The notes under the pieces are model-generated. The model saw only the letters and a program-made list of their open reading frames with translations. It made no database searches and was not told the origin of the DNA. The translations under genes were made by a program, and so were the position numbers. Shown one piece after another: positions 23,520 to 59,787 of a DNA stretch of 64,000 nt. The stretch spans positions 1,488,001 through 1,552,000 of the forward strand of contig JBLDXI010000003.1 in assembly GCA_047495785.1 (NCBI GenBank). Reading direction: 5' to 3'. The stretch comes from Lepidodermella squamata. Lineage: Eukaryota; Animalia; Gastrotricha. Positions within the stretch are counted from its first letter, which is position 1; every line of letters starts with the position of its first letter.

Positions 23520-24653
23520 AATTTCCTGGATAAATTAAATGAAGAATTTGCAATGCGCTAAATCGTGACCGTGAATTGCAATGCCAAAGTGAGAAGTTGA
23601 TGGTTTGCAAACTTATTGGATGATTGTATTCTTGATGAAATATTAAATAAACTATATCCGCAAGCACATTACTGACGTTTGTTATCACTGTACATCTACC
23701 ACTGTTAACGTTCGATCACATGGCATTTGGTTAACTTATACTTATAGTAAACTTTTAATTAACTTGAGCTTAGCTGCTAGTTATTTCTCGATCACACCCA
23801 TCATATCATGTCTAGTCAACGAGGTCAAGGTCATTCACCGCGAAATTTTTATCACGCATCAGTCATAAGTGCCGATCAGATGATTTTTATGTTTATCGAT
23901 CAGATATCGATCGATTTATCGATAATCGATAATATTGCGATTTTATGCTGATATCAGTGATACTTGGTTATTTTCATGCGATGAACTCAAAAATCACCAT
24001 GAAATTGGACCAATCATCACCCGAATCATGGAAATCAATCACCGATAATCGATAATCGATAATCGATAACTATCCAAAGTGCTATGGTCTATGACTGTTT
24101 CTAGGGGTATTTTAGTGCGCTGATTCGATTGCGCGCGTCAAAAATCTGATACCTGGCTGCGTTTCCATTCTATTAGTGAAAAACATGAATTATCTGTACG
24201 TCACAAAGCAAATTTCTCTGTACGTCACGGCGTTATTAATTTTTTGACGGCTTACCAAGGCAGCTAGCCAATATTGAGTTTCAAAATATGAAAACCTGGG
24301 TCATTACGCGTATGCCTGATTTTTGGCGCAGGGACTGAGCGATATTTGAGGGCTAGGCTGCTAGCCAAAATAGGGTCAGTTTAGGATTGCTCGACTTTCT
24401 CTGTACGTCACGGCGACTTTGCCCTCTGGCGCTGTCTTGAAAACTAGCGTTACATAGCAGGACAACAGCGCAGGACACTCGAAAAATATTCAGGAGTAAA
24501 ACGAGTGCTCATTTGCGTTCTTAGCATGCATAGTTTTTACATAATGCCTCTTTGACCAATCGCAGGTGGGTGTGTCACCTCTGTACGGCACGCGTGGCGG
24601 CACCCAAATCAGAAATAAAAATGCAGTTCTGTAAAATTGGAATTAAACAATCA

Positions 24654-24725
24654 AGGTCCCATCGAGAATCAAACTCGAGTCGCTGGATTCAGAGTCCATA
24701 GTGCTAACCGCTACACCATGGAACC
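24654..24725 (-). tRNA. tRNA-Gln(CTG), probably pseudogene copy
   Basis: Near-identical to the 30967 copy but with T-loop GTTTGA instead of GTTCGA and a changed anticodon-stem base. Confidence 0.8.
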
Positions 24726-24904
24726 TGTGATCAGGTTGACTGTACTCGTTAAGGCTTATTATATTCAAGCTGTTACAACAACAGGCCGTGACTTCATAAC
24801 CTTGTTATCTCCACATCTCCGTTTTCACATCAGCATGAAGCATTGTTGATGAAATACTTAATGCCATTAACAAGACCTTAAAGCCGGTCTCATATTCAAG
24901 CAAG

Positions 24905-24975
24905 GCATCGGTGGTTCAGTGGTAGAATTCTCGCCTGCCACGCGGGAGGCCCGGGTTCGATTCCCGGCCGATGCA
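24905..24975 (+). tRNA. tRNA-Gly(GCC)
   Basis: GCATCGGTGGTTCAGTGGTAGAATTCTCGCCTGCCACGCGGGAGGCCCGGGTTCGATTCCCGGCCGATGCA, canonical cloverleaf. Confidence 0.97.
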
Positions 24976-38662: not shown

Positions 38663-40555
38663 GATGAGTAATTTATCTGTGCTAATTCCGCCTATTGTAA
38701 CCACCCACGATGATTCATCAAACGATGACCCGTTGACATCTCTCTCCCGTAAAAATTCATCCGCCCAAGGCTTGAACCCATCATCAGTTCGCCTCGTCGT
38801 GCCGCCGCCTAATTTTCGCCCGGCTAATAACGAAGATGAAGATGCGTTTTTCGAAAATTGGGACACTTTCGATGGCATCACAATGCCGCCTCTCATCATG
38901 CCGCGAACTTCAATTAGCCTTGCGAGCAGTCAAAATTTCGACTCAGCTCGACGGCCGTCACGCTTTAGCGAACAGCAAGGCCAGGTATCTAGTACATGAA
39001 ATGAAGTGACTGCGCAAATTTTTGGATTCCGAAAAATTTCCGTAAAAAAATATAAAAATTCTGCGGAAACGTTTTACAGCAGGATTATTTATTCATTTCA
39101 AGATAAATCGAAAATTCAATTAAAATAGGGAACAAATTCCGAAATTCGTAGGGGGACAAATACGACGGGACAATTAAGACGGGACAAATAAGACGAGGAC
39201 GATTAAGATAATTTATTATTAATTTTATAACGGGACAATTAAGACGAGGACAATTAAGACAAGGACAAATAAGACGAATTAAAAAATAACACAATTACTG
39301 GGCTTTTGGTTGGGATTTTGGTTAAGGTTAAGGTTAGGGTTAGGGGTTAGGGGTTAGGGGTTAGGGGTTAGGGTTAGGGTTAGGGTTAGGTTTAGGGCTA
39401 GGGTTAGGGTTAGGTTAGGGTTAGGGTTAGGATCAGGATTAGTCTTAATTGTCCCGTTATAAAATTAATTATTAATTATCTTGATCGTCCTCGTCTTATT
39501 TGTCCCGTCTTAATTGTCTATATCTTAATTGTCCTGTCTTATTTGTACCCTTTCCCCGAAATTAAAATTCAAATATTAATTCAGATGCAAATTGTCGGGT
39601 AACTTTTTCAAAAAAATTTGAGAAAATTTCAAATTCCAAATTTTGAATTTTGTTATTTTTCCTATTCTAGGAACTCGAGCAAAGAAGGCCGTCCCGGATG
39701 AGTGAGGCCATCAATAATAACCTGGAACGTCGATCGTCTCGCATGAGTGAACGAAGCAGTATTTCGAACACAATGTTACCAGGGGAGAAATTCCGATCGC
39801 GCCTTCGCACGCTGTCGACAATTGAACTGCAAGTTCCGCCCGATTTGCAAAAGGCAGACAGTGTCGTGCGGCTGACACGCGACAAAGACGGCGGTGTCAT
39901 CGTGATCCGAAGCGCCACAGAGGCAATTTAATTTCTTGAATTCGAAATTTTTTTAAAAATGCACAAATATTTATTATTTGAATAAATCAATAATTCTGTT
40001 TTCCACGAAAAAAGAAAAATTCAAATTTTCAATTTTCAACAATTCAAATTTTCAAATTTAAAGAAAAATTTGATTTCCCTAAAGGTTTGTTGGCGAGATG
40101 ACGTTCACGCTCTGCTCGAGCTGTATTCTGATCAGCTGATGCCGACTTATCGAAAGCAGGTCCCAGTTCCGACCGGAGGGTTGGACGTAGCCATGTCACT
40201 ACGCAGATACCACACGCGTTTCATGAAACATCAACGAATTCTACTTCTATCAGCTCGATTCCGGCGAAGAGGCATCGGCGACGTAAAATCAGCCGCGGAA
40301 GCTGAGTCAGGAAAAAGTTATTTCACTACATTTTAGTTATTTTTTCGAATTTAACGCGATTTTTTCCCCCAGCTTCAGCTCGGTCGGTTTTGAGCAATTT
40401 CAGCCACAAAAGCTTTGCTGTGAACGCCTTCATGCCTTCAAAGTCTCAGCAATTAAAGCCCAATGTTACAGCCCGATCTCGCCTGCCTTCAGTAGCGTCA
40501 TCAACAGCATCGGGAAAATCAACATCAAAACGGAATCAGGACAATTTTATTTAAA
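38663..40555 (+). CDS. Uncharacterised Ser/Arg-rich multi-exon protein
   Basis: GC-richer ORF segments (38663-38984, 39671-39922, 40085-~40310, ~40373-40555) separated by AT-rich introns, with repeated RRPS/RRSS sites. Start and some junctions are uncertain. Confidence 0.5.
39147..39555. mobile_element. Foldback/MITE-like element with an internal telomere-type TTAGGG tract
   Basis: Inverted arms built of ~15-bp GGACAA[AT]TAAGAC subrepeats, central (TTAGGG/TTAGGGG)n at ~39320-39432, flanking 8-bp direct repeat CCGAAATT. Confidence 0.8.
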
Positions 40556-40655
40556 ATCAACGTTGAAAAAATTGAGAAAAATAATTATCACAATAATCAC
40601 GTAAAATTGTCACCGTCATTTCATCGAACCAATCGAATAGCCTGAAAAATATAAA

Positions 40656-40803
40656 AAATGTTAGTAAATTCCGATTTTGAAAATCGATAGATCGAAATCG
40701 AATTTCAATGAATGAAATAAACTTTTAATTTGCCCAGTTTTTAAACGGCTTCAAATTGTTGAATTAATAGCCAATCTTTCGAGACCGAGTTATGAAACGG
40801 GCC
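40656..40803 (-). ncRNA. H/ACA snoRNA type A copy 1 (predicted guide for 18S rRNA Psi~105)
   Basis: 5' hairpin with pocket CAUAACU / UUUAA, H box AAAUUA 14 nt after the upper stem, AU-rich 3' hairpin, ACA. Confidence 0.75.
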
Positions 40804-40882
40804 AACTAATTAATGATTTTCATTAAAATTACGTACCTTGAACACTGTAAAGCTCCGAATCGGCTGAAAATATATAAAACAT

Positions 40883-41119
40883 TGATGTCAGATTAACTTG
40901 TTACCGAGTCATTACAAAATATGCTTGGCAGACGGTGAAGTCTGTCGAAATTGGGGCCGCATCAGCGAGCAGGTAAAGCGGCAAAGCGGAGGAGAGACCT
41001 CGTAGGCTGTTGTGCCTGCTCGCGGCACTGTTTAGATTCCCAATATCGATTACCTCTACCCGCCATGAGATAGCAAACTAAGCATTAAGTTGGCTAGCTT
41101 GCTGGGTGACAAGGCAGGT
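40883..41119 (-). ncRNA. Three-hairpin H/ACA-like RNA type B copy 1
   Basis: 5' hairpin, UAGANNNA hinge, long GC-rich middle hairpin closed by UCGAUAUUGGG/CCCAAUUUCGA, 3' hairpin, ACAU. Confidence 0.6.
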
Positions 41120-41216
41120 TTTAAATTAAAAAATCACATTATTGGCTTACCTTATAGTCCATCATTTCGGCGATATATCGCATTTGCAGCTGTTTGTCTT
41201 GTTATCTAGGCAAAAA

Positions 41217-41366
41217 GCATGTATTAAGAATTGAAAAAATTGAAAGAAATAAATATATTTTCCCAATTTTCAAAAATCCTTCTTAATTTAATTTGCCCAG
41301 TTTTTAAACGGCTTCAAATTGTTGAATTAATAGCCAATCTTTCGAGACCGAGTTATGAAACGGGCC
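41217..41366 (-). ncRNA. H/ACA snoRNA type A copy 2
   Basis: Identical 5' hairpin and H box. 3' stem AUUAAGAA/UUCUUAAU is followed directly by ACA. Confidence 0.8.
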
Positions 41367-41459
41367 TAATAATTATCGAATGATTTTTTAGCAACATTAC
41401 TTACCTTCAACGAAAATCAGCTTCGAAGCTTCGAATCGGCTGTAAAATAACAGAAATAT

Positions 41460-41713
41460 TTATGTCAGATTAAGCTAGGACCAAAACATCACAAAATATG
41501 CTTGGTTGGCGTTAGTCTGCCGAAAATTGGGACCCGTAGCTGCATCAGCGAGCAGGCAAAGCGACAACAGGGAGGAGACCACGTAGGCTATTGTGCCCGA
41601 AAGCCTGCTCGCTGGTGCGGCACAGGTTAGATTCCCACTATCGATTATTTCTACCCACTAGTGGTAGCAACCTAAGCATGAAGTTAGCTAGCTTGCTGGC
41701 TATTTAAGCGGGT
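41460..41713 (-). ncRNA. Three-hairpin H/ACA-like RNA type B copy 2
   Basis: Same architecture as copy 1, terminal CUGACAU. Confidence 0.6.
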
Positions 41714-41837
41714 CTTTAATCGAATTAAAAATTTCACATTGAAGTGGTTTTCGGCTTACATTTCTCGCGCTGATAACTCCGTCAATTTGTCGATATTTCG
41801 CGTTTATCAGCTGTTGCTGAGTTATCTAGACACAAAA

Positions 41838-41983
41838 GTTTGTATTAAAACTGAAAAGAAATTGAAAAAATATATTTTCTCAATTTTTCAAAATCCTTCT
41901 TAATTTAATTTGCCCAGTTTTTAAACGGCTTCAAATTGTTGAAATAATAGCCAATCTTTCGAGACCGAGTTATGAAACGGGCC
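41838..41983 (-). ncRNA. H/ACA snoRNA type A copy 3
   Basis: 5' hairpin differs by one loop base. H box and ACA present. Confidence 0.8.
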
Positions 41984-42084
41984 TAAAACGTTTTGCCATC
42001 AAGAAATAACAGAACAACTAACCTTCAATTTTCTAGCTCCTCGACATCAAAGGCGTAGTAGTTGTCTGTTTAAAAAAAAGAGAT

Positions 42085-42330
42085 TAATGTCGATTGCCAG
42101 AAACCGAAGTACTACGTCAAAATGCTTCGATACCGGGACAATCAGCTGAAAATTGGGACCAGCGGCCGAAACAGCGAGTAGACAAAAGCGGCAATGACGT
42201 GGAGTTGCCGCTGTTGAGCGCCTATTCGCTGTTCCGGCGCCAGGTTTAACCCCACTATCGAATCACTCTAGCCACAAGGTGCGCACAAAAAAGCACACGC
42301 AAAGCTTATTTGTGGTCAAGAATGCGGCTA
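42085..42330 (-). ncRNA. Three-hairpin H/ACA-like RNA type B copy 3
   Basis: Diverged sequence with stems retained (CAGCGAAUAGGC/GUCUACUCGCUG), GGUCCCAAUUUUC motif, GACAU end. Confidence 0.6.
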
Positions 42331-42460
42331 TTTTTAATTTGAAATAAAAAAAAATGAAGACTTCCTTACTTTATTTGAAACAGTGAAAAAATTTTCTCCA
42401 AGACGAAAGAGTTGACGGGAGCCTGTAGTTGCTGTAGTCATCTATTATTGGGAAAAAATG

Positions 42461-42609
42461 CGATGTCATTAAATTGAAAAATTAATTGAAAATCCGAGGC
42501 TAGTTTTCAATTTAAAATTCATTTTAATTTTTAATTTGCCCAGTTTTTAAACGGCTTCAAATTGTTGAATTAACAGCCAATCTTTCGAGACCGAGTTATG
42601 AAACGGGCC
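42461..42609 (-). ncRNA. H/ACA snoRNA type A copy 4
   Basis: 5' hairpin differs by one loop base. H box, unrelated AU-rich 3' hairpin, ACA. Confidence 0.78.
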
Positions 42610-42687
42610 GATAAAAATATAAAAATAGCGTGAAAGCCTCACCTGATTCCGAGATCTTGCAAATCGTCGCCTGTAAAATCAGAAAAA

Positions 42688-42940
42688 CAATGTCAGCTCG
42701 CAGAAATACAAAAATTCGACTACTAAATTAAGGAATTTTGGGGCGTGGCGAGCAGCTGAAAATTGGGACCCGGCCGCCCCGGCGAGCTGGCAAAGCAACA
42801 ACAGGGTGTGCGAGATGGATTGTGCCTGAAAGCCAGCTCACCGAAGCGGCGCAAGGTTTAACCCCACTATCGAATTTTTCTATCTGCATGGGGCTCAAAA
42901 TAGCACTAAAATCGCTAGTTTGAGGGTTGGAAATGCGGGA
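42688..42940 (-). ncRNA. Three-hairpin H/ACA-like RNA type B copy 4
   Basis: UCGAUAGUGGGGUUAAACC...GGUCCCAAUUUUCAG, 3' stem GCUCGC/GCGAGC, GACAU end. Confidence 0.6.
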
Positions 42941-43017
42941 GCGTAATCATAATAATAAGCCAGAAAATACCTTTAATTAATTCAAGCCAGCAAATCCAAT
43001 TATAACCTGAAATTAAA

Positions 43018-43270
43018 AAAATGGAGAACTGATGAACACCTCGAAAAGCATCAAGTAGCTGAGTCAAAGTCCAAAACCAGTTCTTTGACAATCAGGTGGT
43101 CGCCGGGCCGTTCAAGACAACGCTTGTCAAACAGGCACTGGAAAGACTGTTGGCAATTAGCCGCATTGAACGACTCAGAAACCAACCTGCTATCACGATA
43201 ATCTACCCATAACTTGAATAAAAGCCGGTTTCACAATGGGATGCATTGAGGCCGGTGGAAACGATGGGTT
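43018..43270 (-). ncRNA. Additional structured H/ACA-like RNA in first host intron
   Basis: Stem ACCCAU/AUGGGU, then H box AGAUUA, a long middle hairpin and a 3' stem AGAACUGGU/AUCAGUUCU ending CCAUUU (not ACA). Confidence 0.45.
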
Positions 43271-45624
43271 CAGCTGACACGATATAAAATTGAACGAGGA
43301 TGTGATAAAATTTACCTGCTTTTAAAAGGCCGCCTTAAGATTTCATCGCACAGAATAATAAGCGATAAGAAAGAAACGCATAGCGCATAGCAATAATAAA
43401 AGCAGTGAGCTAAAATGAGTGGTGTGTAATAAAATTGCTTGCCACGTGGCAGCAGCATGGCTGTTTTTATGAATGACGTAGTAGCGTAATAATCGGAAAT
43501 GAGGTCATAGCGTGTGTTTGTTTTTTTTCGCATTTCTCCACTAACATTTTTATTGCTCGTTGGGCAGCCGAAATTGAATGCCGAAGTTACTCCAGGGCTT
43601 GAAATGAATGAACGACTGAAAATAAACAGAGATAAAATTCGATCAAAGCCGAAACTCCCATCAGCATTTATAGCATGCGACGTTGACATTTCAGTATCGA
43701 GGATATTAAGGCAGCTCAAATCTCAGCGCAAAATCTGGATGAAATCCTATGAAAAATTCTAGTATAAGAAGACTAGCTTGCCTTCCTTTCATACTGGACA
43801 CAGACAGCCAGCTGTATTTTGCGACGGATTGCCATTGATGAAACAGGAAGGGATATCCAACCTCCAATAGAATTAGAGCTACTTTCATCAACTTTTTAGA
43901 AAATGTCTACACATTCAGCGTGTCCCATAAATAACGCAAGCAAAAAATAATACGCGAAAAAGGGCTCAGAAACTCTTAAATGCGAGTCGAAATGACATCC
44001 AATGGCCTAAACATTGTTAGAAAATTTAAAAAAATCACGAGAATAGGAATAAAGTGTATGTCACTTGTCAATGGGATTAATAAGTCCGGAGAAAATTGAT
44101 CCAGCCAAATAAAATTACCGGGAATTACCGAACCAGTTACCATCGTGATTTTCCGGGTTTTCTACGGTAAATTTTCTATCACTTCGGTTAAATCTTATTG
44201 TCGCACAACTCGATTAACTTACACTACTTATGTACTGAGCAAATTGGTTCGATGTTAGCGGCCAGCGTGCCCTTTTGAAACCACAAATTTTTTTGTACCA
44301 AATTTTTATACGAAAGTATATTTTTCGAAATAAACATAATAATAATAATAAATCGTGGATACAGGATAAAATATTTTCTCGGTAGAGGTTCAATTTAAAA
44401 TAATTACTTGAATTTCAACAACAATTCGCCATAAAAATAGTTGAGCAAATTCTGGGAAACGCTAAAGTGGATATCGGGTTTTTTCGCTGGTTCTCGTGAA
44501 AATGTCGAAATTTTTCGCAAAAAATTCATCGTTGTGATGCCACCTTGTCGCTGGTTCAATAAATAACAATTAATTTTCTTCACGATTTTTCTGAAGAGAA
44601 AATGGCATCTATGCCTTACGCCTACAACCTCCAATTTTTCGAATACATTACATTCGAATACGTTCATTTTTTCTACGAAAAAGTAACATACAAGGCTGGA
44701 GGGGGAGAGCAAAAGATTATCCAATAATTTCGTTAATTACAAAAATAAAAAAAAATCGACGGATTTTTTTTACGGGATCTGAATTTTTTTTTGGGAACTT
44801 CATTGCTGTCTGCAATCTATAAAGTAACCGTAATAAAGTAAAAATAGTGAAATTTTGCTCCGCGTTACACATTGGGTACTCTTTCATTTGCAACTCTCGA
44901 TCACTTTTTAATCAGCCTCAGAATCTGAAGTAGAAAAATCGTAGAACAAATCAAGCTGGATCGATAACCTCAGTTTATCTTGATCATTGATTATTTTTCT
45001 CAATTTTCGAAAAAACTGAATCGATCACAATTAGAGCGGAAATATCATTGCTGGGTGTAATTATTACCCGGCGTAAGACTTAACCCACTCGGCATGCTTA
45101 AAGCACTAGAATGAAGGCAAGTTGAACAACGGCTCCGTCCATTGATTAAGCGGCGACGAGTAGGCGGACCGGCTATCTGATAGTTCGAGGCGGCGGTGGC
45201 TCCGTCACGAAACAACTTGCCGAAAAATGAAAAATAAAATAACAATAATATAGCCAGTATATTAAGCTTGACGACCAGGTGGCAAGACGGGTATCCAGCC
45301 CACACTCGGCCGGCGTTTTAGTCGCCGGGCTTGTTGTAGCATCAACATAATAGTAATTTCTACAAAAACTAATTAAACGCTAATATTACGCAGGTATGAA
45401 ACGCGCGCTCGGGTCTATTAGCGTAGTGCTTTTGTATTTATTGACTAACGGCCTGGGAGACGGGCGCCCGGCGGTGCGTTCGGCCGCCGTCTCATCTCAT
45501 CAACATGAGCACTCCATTTTAGACTTCAAGTTGATTTCACAGCCAGTTTTTTGCCTTTCATCACCATTGATCACCAATTATTGACTCTAATTATCTAATA
45601 TTCCATAGGCCAATTATTTAGATA

Positions 45625-57739: not shown

Positions 57740-59787
57740 TCAAACATGCAGCGCCGCCGCTGGTTTATTGCCCGGCCTAGGCTGGGCGCATTTGTTGAGC
57801 CCGCCTGATGCCGACGGCGGCGACGGCCTGTTCGCGCCGAAAATAGCCGACGGTTGCAAGAAGTTGTTCGGATTCGCGAAATTGTTGCTGTTGTTACTCG
57901 TATTGTAATAACAATTATTCGATGAAGAAGTCGCGCCGGGAAATTGGCCGCCGAAAATTTGAGGCGGATTTTGATTATAATTAAACATCGCCACGTTATT
58001 TTGCTGTTGATACACGTGGAAATTTTGTTGCAACGGCAAAATTTGCTGATTCTGGTAATGCGATGACCAATCAACTGGCTGTTGCTGCTGTTGAATTTGA
58101 GGAATTTGGTTCATTTTAGGGTGGCTCAGCTGTTGAGGCTGCTGTTGGTTAGGCATGACGATGAGCCGGTCTTTGAACTGCGCGTACAACTGGCCCAAAT
58201 GGCCGCCGACTTGGTGGTTATGGCGCTGAGCCGACGACGAGGAGTGTTTCGAAGAGCAGCCGTTATTACTCCGGCTTGACCCAGAATTATTGCCTCCAGA
58301 ACTCACGCCAGCGCTTCTCGACGCAAATGGCCATGACTGTTAATAAAACACATTTTTAGCGCATTGAAGCCAAAAACATCGAATTTCCCGAATTTTTCAC
58401 GTATGTTAAGAGTTGTATGAATCGAAAGAGCTAAACGAGACGAATATTTTGATATAAGTCTCTAAAAACGTCCCAAAAACTTGATTTTGTCTGCAATTTC
58501 TTGCAATGTTAATTTTGATTTGTTTCTCTTTATTTTTTTTATTAAATTCAAGGTTGATTACCATGAGTGGTAAATTCGGCGGTAAATTAGGACCGGCAGT
58601 CGTTGTTTTCGAGTTGGAACTGCTAGCATTAGCAGCCGGGTTGTTGGGTGCTGCGAGAGGTAGCGCCATGCTGAGTAATTTCGAAGCGGAGGCGGAAACA
58701 GCCGATAAAATGGCCGAACTCTGCTTGCCCTGCCGCGTTGATGTGCTCGAATGGCCGGGCTTCGGCGCGCTCTCACTCGGCTGGTCATCGTCGAGTATTT
58801 GTTTCAAATGAGCAATATACTGAAAAAATAGAAAAAATTAAAAACGGGGTTAAAAAGCAGAATAAAAAAAATGAAAATTCTCAAAATAAATTGCTTAAAA
58901 ATTGAAAAATTTGAAAAATGTTCAACTTCAATTCTGTCAATTCCTTTTCAATAATATTTTTCGAAAAATTCATAAAAATATTATTTGTAACGAATTTTTA
59001 AGGGTGTGAAATTGCAGGGTTCCAGCGCTAAATTTGAGGATCCAATAATGAATTTACCTAACTAAAATATGGTTTTTCGAATTTTTTCTTCTTCCTTATA
59101 ATATCGATATTTTCGCTATCAAATTTACGCGATAGATATTGCTTTTACGTGTGATGTGCGGTTCAATTTGCCCTACACTCACTCATGCATAGCCGATATC
59201 GATTCAAATTATCGATTTTACAAATCACTGATTTTTCCGATGAAAAAAGCCGAGAAAGCAAAACTTTAAAACAATTACACCTATCTCGCAGCTAATACTA
59301 AAATTTCAAGGTTTATCGCGAATAGAAAAGGCCAAAATCGCGAAGAACCAGAAAAAATTAGCGCTGGAACCTCAGTTTTATGGTCATTAATCAAAAATCG
59401 ATAAAAGCTTACGCATGATGCCAGCCGGAGCGTGTCGAGTTTTGAAAGTTTAGTATCAGGCGGTACCCAGGGCAGACTGGTTTTCAGGCGGCAAAAGGCC
59501 TTCGATAGCACCCGCATGCGCTGCCGTTCACGCGCATTGGCCGCGTTCCGCTGCTGGACAGGCTTCGCCGTTCCGGTTGAGCCATCGCCACTGCTCAAAT
59601 CCGACCCGGTGCTATTAGCCGAGCCAGATGACGCTAGCGAGAGGTTGTTATTGCAGCTTGACCCAGTTCCAGAGCGGCGCTGTCGTTTCGCCGCTGAGAC
59701 ATTGACAACAAGCGGGTCGAGTTTGACCGAAGGCAGCTGTTGGCCGAGCCCGGCCAGGGGCTCGCACTTGGCTCGAGATCGCTTCAT
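57740..59787 (-). CDS. TCF21: bHLH transcription factor of the TCF21/musculin (MyoR) family, 3 exons
   Basis: [46 protein letters not shown]|YIAHLKQIL and a downstream WPF motif, near-identical to the TCF21/MSC bHLH. Confidence 0.92.

Follow-up and report, generated by a model that had tools for sequence, protein, structure and literature searches.

Candidate orphan H/ACA-type RNAs with a conserved internal hairpin in the introns of a non-coding gene of the gastrotrich Lepidodermella squamata

Four introns of a non-coding gene of Lepidodermella squamata each contain, on the minus strand, one 240–258-nt RNA of a family (family A hereafter) that combines an H/ACA-type frame with a long internal hairpin (IH). 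The gene lies in the window, that is, the whole stretch of 64,000 nucleotides that was analyzed (contig JBLDXI010000003.1, positions 1,488,001 to 1,552,000), and coordinates below are those of the window unless a contig is named. We propose, with a probability of a little over one half (about 0.55), that family A consists of lineage-specific, intron-encoded orphan H/ACA-type RNAs, in which the outer hairpins provide an RNP scaffold and the IH is the selected part. According to this model, the RNAs would be released from the spliced host gene, which would have grown by tandem duplication of a unit made of an A intron, an exon, an intron containing a second snoRNA (snoRNA B), and another exon. 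The 5' and 3' hairpins, together with the H (AGA...) and ACA boxes, would protect the RNA by allowing a two-protomer H/ACA particle to assemble on it, the pseudouridylation pockets would escape selection and guide nothing detectable, and selection would act on the IH, preserving its long stem through compensatory changes and its base in sequence. The IH could then be where a protein or RNA partner docks on the H/ACA particle, as the snR30 IH contacts Utp23; this role is a guess made by analogy. Binding of the H/ACA proteins (Cbf5/dyskerin, Nop10, Nhp2, and Gar1), accumulation of the RNA and a function of the IH are what we infer from the sequences.

The host gene (table 1) has GT..AG borders at 9 of 9 introns, with AAG/GTAAG-type donors and pyrimidine-rich acceptors, while its exons are short and neither coding nor conserved. 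Upstream of exon 1 is an E-box (CACGTG, 43448–43443), and a pyrimidine-rich, TOP-like stretch lies near 43375–43360; no clear conserved coding neighbor was found within about 5 kb of the gene. Intron 1 contains the diverged copy c5, introns 2, 4, 6, and 8 contain c4, c3, c2, and c1, respectively, and introns 3, 5, 7, and 9 contain B4 to B1, an array that expanded through tandem duplication of a ~600-bp unit. In all nine introns (40642–43316), the ACA is located 14–26 nt before the 3' splice site, the snoRNA ending near the acceptor, and a branch-site-like word (UUAAU, CUGAC, or CUAAC) falls on or beside the ACA box; an overlap between the branch point and the snoRNA 3' end is thus possible and would be odd for processing. 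The GACAU of family A, found 23–26 nt before the 3' splice site, is itself branch-site-like (CUGAC), so that part of its conservation could be for splicing. Two other features of the window were recorded. A degenerate, interstitial TTAGGG-like tract occupies 39288–39444, close to the downstream side of the host gene, and is flanked (39160–39277 and 39440–39560) by 14–15-bp tandem repeats of the type GACGGGACAAWTAA. The DRE-like word TATCGAT forms clusters at 23894–24068 and 59102–59216, and the densest repeat cluster adjoins the tRNA genes at 24654–24975.

Table 1. Features of the host gene and its intronic RNAs (window coordinates)
Feature	Position	Strand	Internal hairpin	H box	Description
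Copy c1	40883–41122	minus	40946–41049	AGAGGU	240 nt; 5' hairpin, H box, IH, 3' hairpin, ACA+3; CM 194.9 bits
Copy c2	41460–41717	minus	41521–41644	AGAAAU/AAAUAA	258 nt; CM 252 bits
Copy c3	42085–42332	minus	42147–42261	AGAGUG	248 nt
Copy c4	42688–42945	minus	42757–42873	AUAGAA/AGAAAA	258 nt; weak 5' lower stem
Diverged copy c5	about 43020–43268	minus	43084–43199	AGAUUA	intron 1; three hairpins
Non-coding host gene	40530–43370	minus			10 exons; one snoRNA per intron; start site inferred
Host exon E1	ends 43316	minus
Host exon E2	43006–42971	minus
Host exon E3	42670–42643	minus
Host exon E4	42441–42370	minus
Host exon E5	42065–42023	minus
Host exon E6	41825–41760	minus
Host exon E7	41439–41405	minus
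Host exon E8	41205–41151	minus
Host exon E9	40863–40837	minus
Host exon E10	from 40641 to AATAAA at 40552–40547	minus
snoRNA B1	40656–40803	minus		AAAUUA	canonical two-hairpin H/ACA guide, 18S U105
snoRNA B2	41217–41366	minus		AAAUUA
snoRNA B3	41838–41983	minus		AAAUUA
snoRNA B4	42461–42609	minus		AAAUUA

The second RNA of the gene, snoRNA B, is 146–150 nt long and consists of a 5' hairpin, the H box, a 3' hairpin and an ACA box. Its 5' (guide) hairpin is near-invariant (identity 0.94), and its pocket forms 13 bp with the 18S sequence around U105 at 14 nt from the H box; the score is 12.5, and 0 of 200 shuffles attain it. The second hairpin has drifted in sequence to the level of the flanks (0.35 for the downstream flank), retaining its fold and the ACA. 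The idea that B might be a single hairpin was ruled out by the H box and by the diverged 3' hairpin and ACA downstream. A weak match of B to SNORA50 rests on the 18S U105 pocket of B; SNORA50, the guide for human 18S position 105, has the U105-fitting pocket in its 3' hairpin, whereas B has it in the 5' hairpin. Genome-wide, the SNORA50 search returned nothing at E up to 1, hence no other SNORA50-like locus. Because the guide hairpin is held at 0.94 while the second one has drifted, only functional parts appear to stay conserved at this locus: in this gene, to judge by the B copies, a pocket that works is held in sequence, and a hairpin that is only structural retains no more than its shape. 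By the same comparison, the outer hairpins of family A behave like the structural hairpin of B.

Copies c1–c4 share the same order of parts, namely a 5' hairpin with an internal loop, U-AGA..., the IH, a 3' hairpin and ACA. This three-hairpin layout is the minimum-energy fold of c2, and the folding energy of each copy is better than that of its own shuffles (z from −2.8 to −4.3). The pattern formed by TCGATAKTGGG, 80–108 nt and CCCAATTT has 4 occurrences in the window (0.00 expected), and with c5 this agrees with the four intronic copies and more distant fifth of the original prediction. The predicted succession of 5' hairpin, hinge, middle hairpin and 3' hairpin ending in GACAU applies to c1–c4 and fails at its end in c5, which has no ACA box. 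When compared with ANANNA, the H boxes have the first and third A in all copies; c1 and c3 lack the last A, read AGANNN and are thus not strict matches, and the AGAUUA of c5 is perfect. The distance from the H box to the top of the 5' pocket is 13–14 nt in c1–c3 and only 10–12 nt in c4; that from the ACA to the top of the 3' pocket (upper stem) is 14–15 nt in c1–c4, the mature 3' end being a predicted one. As MAFFT could not align c5 and the 3' hairpins in register, the 3' hairpins and the c5 stems were compared by hand, which gave, for the 3' hairpins, a basal stem differing in each copy, an internal loop, an upper stem, and a 15-nt loop. In c3, the two strands of the 3' pocket can pair with each other, closing the pocket. 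The hinge of c4 (AAAAAUUCGA, 42870–42879) shows uninterrupted 10-nt complementarity to the 3' strand of the 3' hairpin in the same copy (42716–42725), and c3 has a 7-nt self-match of this kind, elsewhere in the 3' hairpin; these complementarities may be alternative folds or A/U-rich chance.

The internal hairpin comprises a conserved base helix of 9–11 pairs with a U-U mismatch and a bulged A, a 4–13-nt 5' bulge (UUAA or UCUAA), a long G+C-rich stem, and a variable apex. Its base strands have the highest mean pairwise identity of the RNA (0.86–0.88), as compared with 0.41–0.42 for the 5' pocket strands, 0.47 for the 3' hairpin, and 0.32–0.35 for neutral intron flanks in the host gene. The outer pockets of family A thus lie near neutrality and appear unconstrained. 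In the four-copy alignment, 95% of the cells are paired over the 46 predicted pairs, and 9 of these pairs carry changes in both partners; shuffles give 3.4±1.4 such pairs (none of 500 attains 9), and controls with slid partners give 0–3. The signal supports the 5' lower stem and the IH, the stem of the latter contributing most; between c2 and c4, for instance, all three substitutions (3/3) in one 12-bp segment of the IH stem are compensated. These counts derive from few events, because the comparison covers 4–5 paralogs of one locus in one genome. At the base of the IH, a G to U change in c1 is matched by the loss of one U opposite, the formerly bulged A being now paired, while c5 displays two double changes (U-A to C-G and G-C to A-U) and a U-G in place of the U-U mismatch, with the bulged A kept. 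Since the two conserved motifs pair and change together in c1 and c5, they form a helix rather than a pair of free antisense elements. An Sm site at AAUUUUC was discarded for similar reasons: the stretch is paired and changes with its partner in the same two copies. The original prediction had announced compensatory changes, a conserved base of the extra hairpin and unconserved outer pockets, all of which are found here. Because its stem is compensated and its base kept in sequence, the IH is likely to be the working part of family A.

No partner was found for the pockets. Scanned against 18S, 5.8S, and 28S rRNA, ITS1/2, the whole IGS+ETS, and U2, U5, and U6, the eight pockets of c1–c4 score 6–9, and 18 to 188 of 200 shuffled guides do as well; against U1, U4, and 5S no target was found above chance, and a looser scan across all pocket boundaries only added noise. 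Because no pocket has a target above chance, family A is orphan, which does not exclude the H/ACA frame. The search for complementarity to pre-rRNA and snRNAs, as the original prediction advised, did reveal that the c2 hinge pairs over 14 nt with a conserved 28S stretch at 2643 and the 3' motif over 13 nt with another at 1024, but the conserved cores that the copies share are alone at the level of chance (81 and 13 of 200 shuffles, respectively) and the extensions are copy-specific, so that an antisense element directed at pre-rRNA was rejected. Noise was all that blastn-short returned against the rDNA unit and the snRNAs, apical-loop matches to 18S 784 and to the ETS stay at noise level, and no partner of the IH emerged. 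The middle hairpin was also considered as a third guide protomer and rejected, as there is no ANA box after the IH and the distance from the IH internal loop is 19 nt. The rDNA (contigs C130 and C62) has a unit of about 9.4 kb with 5S on the opposite strand within the spacer; C130 contains an inverted partial copy head to head with a full one, and the spacer holds a 14-nt copy of the conserved 28S word AGAUUCCUACUGUC.

The architecture of family A has precedents. The H/ACA RNA snR30/U17 has a third, internal hairpin between box H and the 3' hairpin, some other H/ACA RNAs also have an internal hairpin, and that of yeast snR30 crosslinks to Utp23, yet is dispensable for viability (PMC7601244). 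Orphan H/ACA RNAs have been recognized as a group (PMC2664660), no eukaryotic H/ACA RNA with three protomers is known (PMC12745780), and AAA is a known variant of ACA (PMC7991803). The suggestion of a possible "undescribed RNA class" in the original prediction was thus too strong, because the internal hairpin and the orphan H/ACA group had both been described already. Family A and snR30/U17 are alike in being orphan H/ACA RNAs with an IH between box H and the 3' hairpin, and snR30/U17 is also intronic and multi-copy in some animals; that snR30/U17 functions otherwise than by pseudouridylation we count as a further likeness. They differ in the conserved part, which is the IH in family A and the 3' hairpin in snR30/U17, and in the m1 and m2 motifs, present only in the latter. 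Canonical guides such as the SNORA50-like snoRNA B share with family A the intronic location, the hairpin-H-hairpin-ACA frame, and a pocket-to-box spacing of 14–15 nt, but family A has an extra hairpin of 104–124 nt and unconserved pockets with no rRNA or snRNA target. Vertebrate-type telomerase RNA likewise uses an H/ACA frame to stabilize an RNA whose function lies elsewhere; unlike it, family A is multi-copy and intronic and lacks a template, a CAB box, and a pseudoknot region 5' of the frame. Archaeal H/ACA sRNAs may also have three hairpins per RNA, each of which guides and has its own ACA/ANA box, whereas the middle hairpin of family A has neither a box nor a pocket at the right distance. 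What is unusual in family A is not the architecture but the pattern of conservation, with free pockets and a fixed hairpin base.

Could family A nevertheless be a known RNA in divergent form? Rfam 15, the first check suggested by the original prediction, matched no known family in the A copies, with nothing at gathering score and nothing believable at E up to 10, and SNORA73 in particular gave no match even at E up to 10. In the genome searched (121.2 Mb, 151 contigs), the covariance model of family A (R1) found the four copies only, and a degenerate pattern added none; the published assembly, the first genome of the phylum, is of 122 Mb in 157 contigs (PMC11660948). A metagenome scan with the two-motif pattern yielded 120 stretches, all attributable to chance (best nhmmer E = 0.19). 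Judged from these searches, family A is restricted to a single locus of this genome, the collections searched having yielded no relatives. A divergent paralog of U17/snR30 or a telomerase RNA might be suspected from the three-hairpin layout with an IH, from the multiple intronic copies, which recall the intronic, multi-copy U17 of Xenopus, and from the proximity of the TTAGGG-like tract. The m1 (AUAUUCCUA) and m2 (AAACCAU) motifs that mark the basal side of the 3' pocket of U17/snR30 are, however, absent from all A copies, as the original prediction had noted, and we found a separate U17/SNORA73 homolog on contig C21 (2178646–2178839, plus strand), which is intronic, 194 nt long and provided with an ACA; it scores 35 bits, below the Rfam cut-off of 74, and has clear m1 (AUAUUCC) and m2 (AAACCAUGCAG) motifs in its 3' hairpin. 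Family A was accordingly rejected as U17/snR30. Telomerase RNA was ruled out for lack of a template: matches to (CCCUAA)n, (CCUAA)n, or (GCCUAA)n extend to 6–7 nt at most, in one copy only, again as the original prediction had it. Overall, we regard either identity as scarcely credible. An H/ACA-type scaRNA was dismissed as well, since the terminal loops of the 5' and 3' hairpins contain no CAB box (UGAG) and no snRNA target was found.

The other explanations bear on what the copies do. They might be ordinary pseudouridylation guides, each with its own target (an mRNA, a tRNA, another ncRNA, or a non-canonical pairing), the IH being a passive expansion. Most copies do have canonical pocket geometry, and orphan guides, whose targets are unknown, are common. 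The dispensability of the yeast snR30 IH for viability points the same way (PMC7601244). We nonetheless consider this explanation unlikely, given that the pockets are near-neutral (0.41) and different in every copy, that c3 has a self-paired 3' pocket and c4 a weak 5' hairpin, and that sequence conservation in the RNA peaks at the base of the IH, which would not be the case for a passive insert. Alternatively, B alone would be functional and the A copies would be decaying passengers, duplicated along with B and not yet eroded, in agreement with the loss of the ACA in c5, a 14-nt deletion in the IH stem of c1, and the unconstrained pockets. Against this stand the contrast within the same introns between the flanks (0.32–0.35) and the hairpin base (0.87), the persistence of the boxes, and the compensated changes in the stems, which together make such decay quite improbable. 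The nearly continuous 30–40-bp stem also evokes a small-RNA precursor, that is, a Drosha or Dicer substrate set on a snoRNA-like frame; a weak MIR1846-type match on the opposite strand reflects the hairpin shape only. As the arms vary by compensation without keeping a mature sequence, and none of six stem and base motifs occurs in the files that supplement the Lepidodermella miRNA/piRNA survey (PMC6468455), we hold this to be very improbable. Finally, the conserved motifs could act in the DNA or the pre-mRNA rather than in the mature RNA, as splicing signals or as a DRE-like TATCGA and a CCAAT box: the window is enriched in TATCGAT (29 vs 9.3 expected), and the 3' motif includes CCAAT and reads UUUUCAG in c3 and c4. 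This is more improbable still, as only c1 and c2 have the complete TATCGAT and the two motifs pair together and co-change in c1 and c5.

We thus favor the reading of family A as orphan H/ACA-type RNAs with a selected IH. The original prediction of an H/ACA scaffold presenting a non-pseudouridylation domain is upheld as regards the architecture, the box-to-pocket spacing, the bona fide guide in the same gene, the unconstrained pockets with no target, and the IH as the probable selected part. A broader interpretation, which we hold to be rather doubtful, is a gastrotrich-specific class of RNPs whose H/ACA particle no longer guides at all and only stabilizes and delivers a conserved IH module, which recruits a protein or RNA partner; if true, it would add a third non-guide kind of H/ACA RNA to snR30/U17 and telomerase RNA. 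To our knowledge, very few H/ACA RNAs work beyond their pockets, namely snR30/U17, telomerase RNA, and partly snR10. The drifting pockets and selected inserted hairpin of family A point to another pocket-independent case, in a phylum for which only one genome has been sequenced and no snoRNAs have been annotated. A control is available within the locus itself, as the neighboring snoRNA B shows selection on a working pocket in introns of the same gene. Should the RNA prove to be stable and bound by dyskerin, the conserved base of the internal hairpin would offer a defined handle in the search for its partner.
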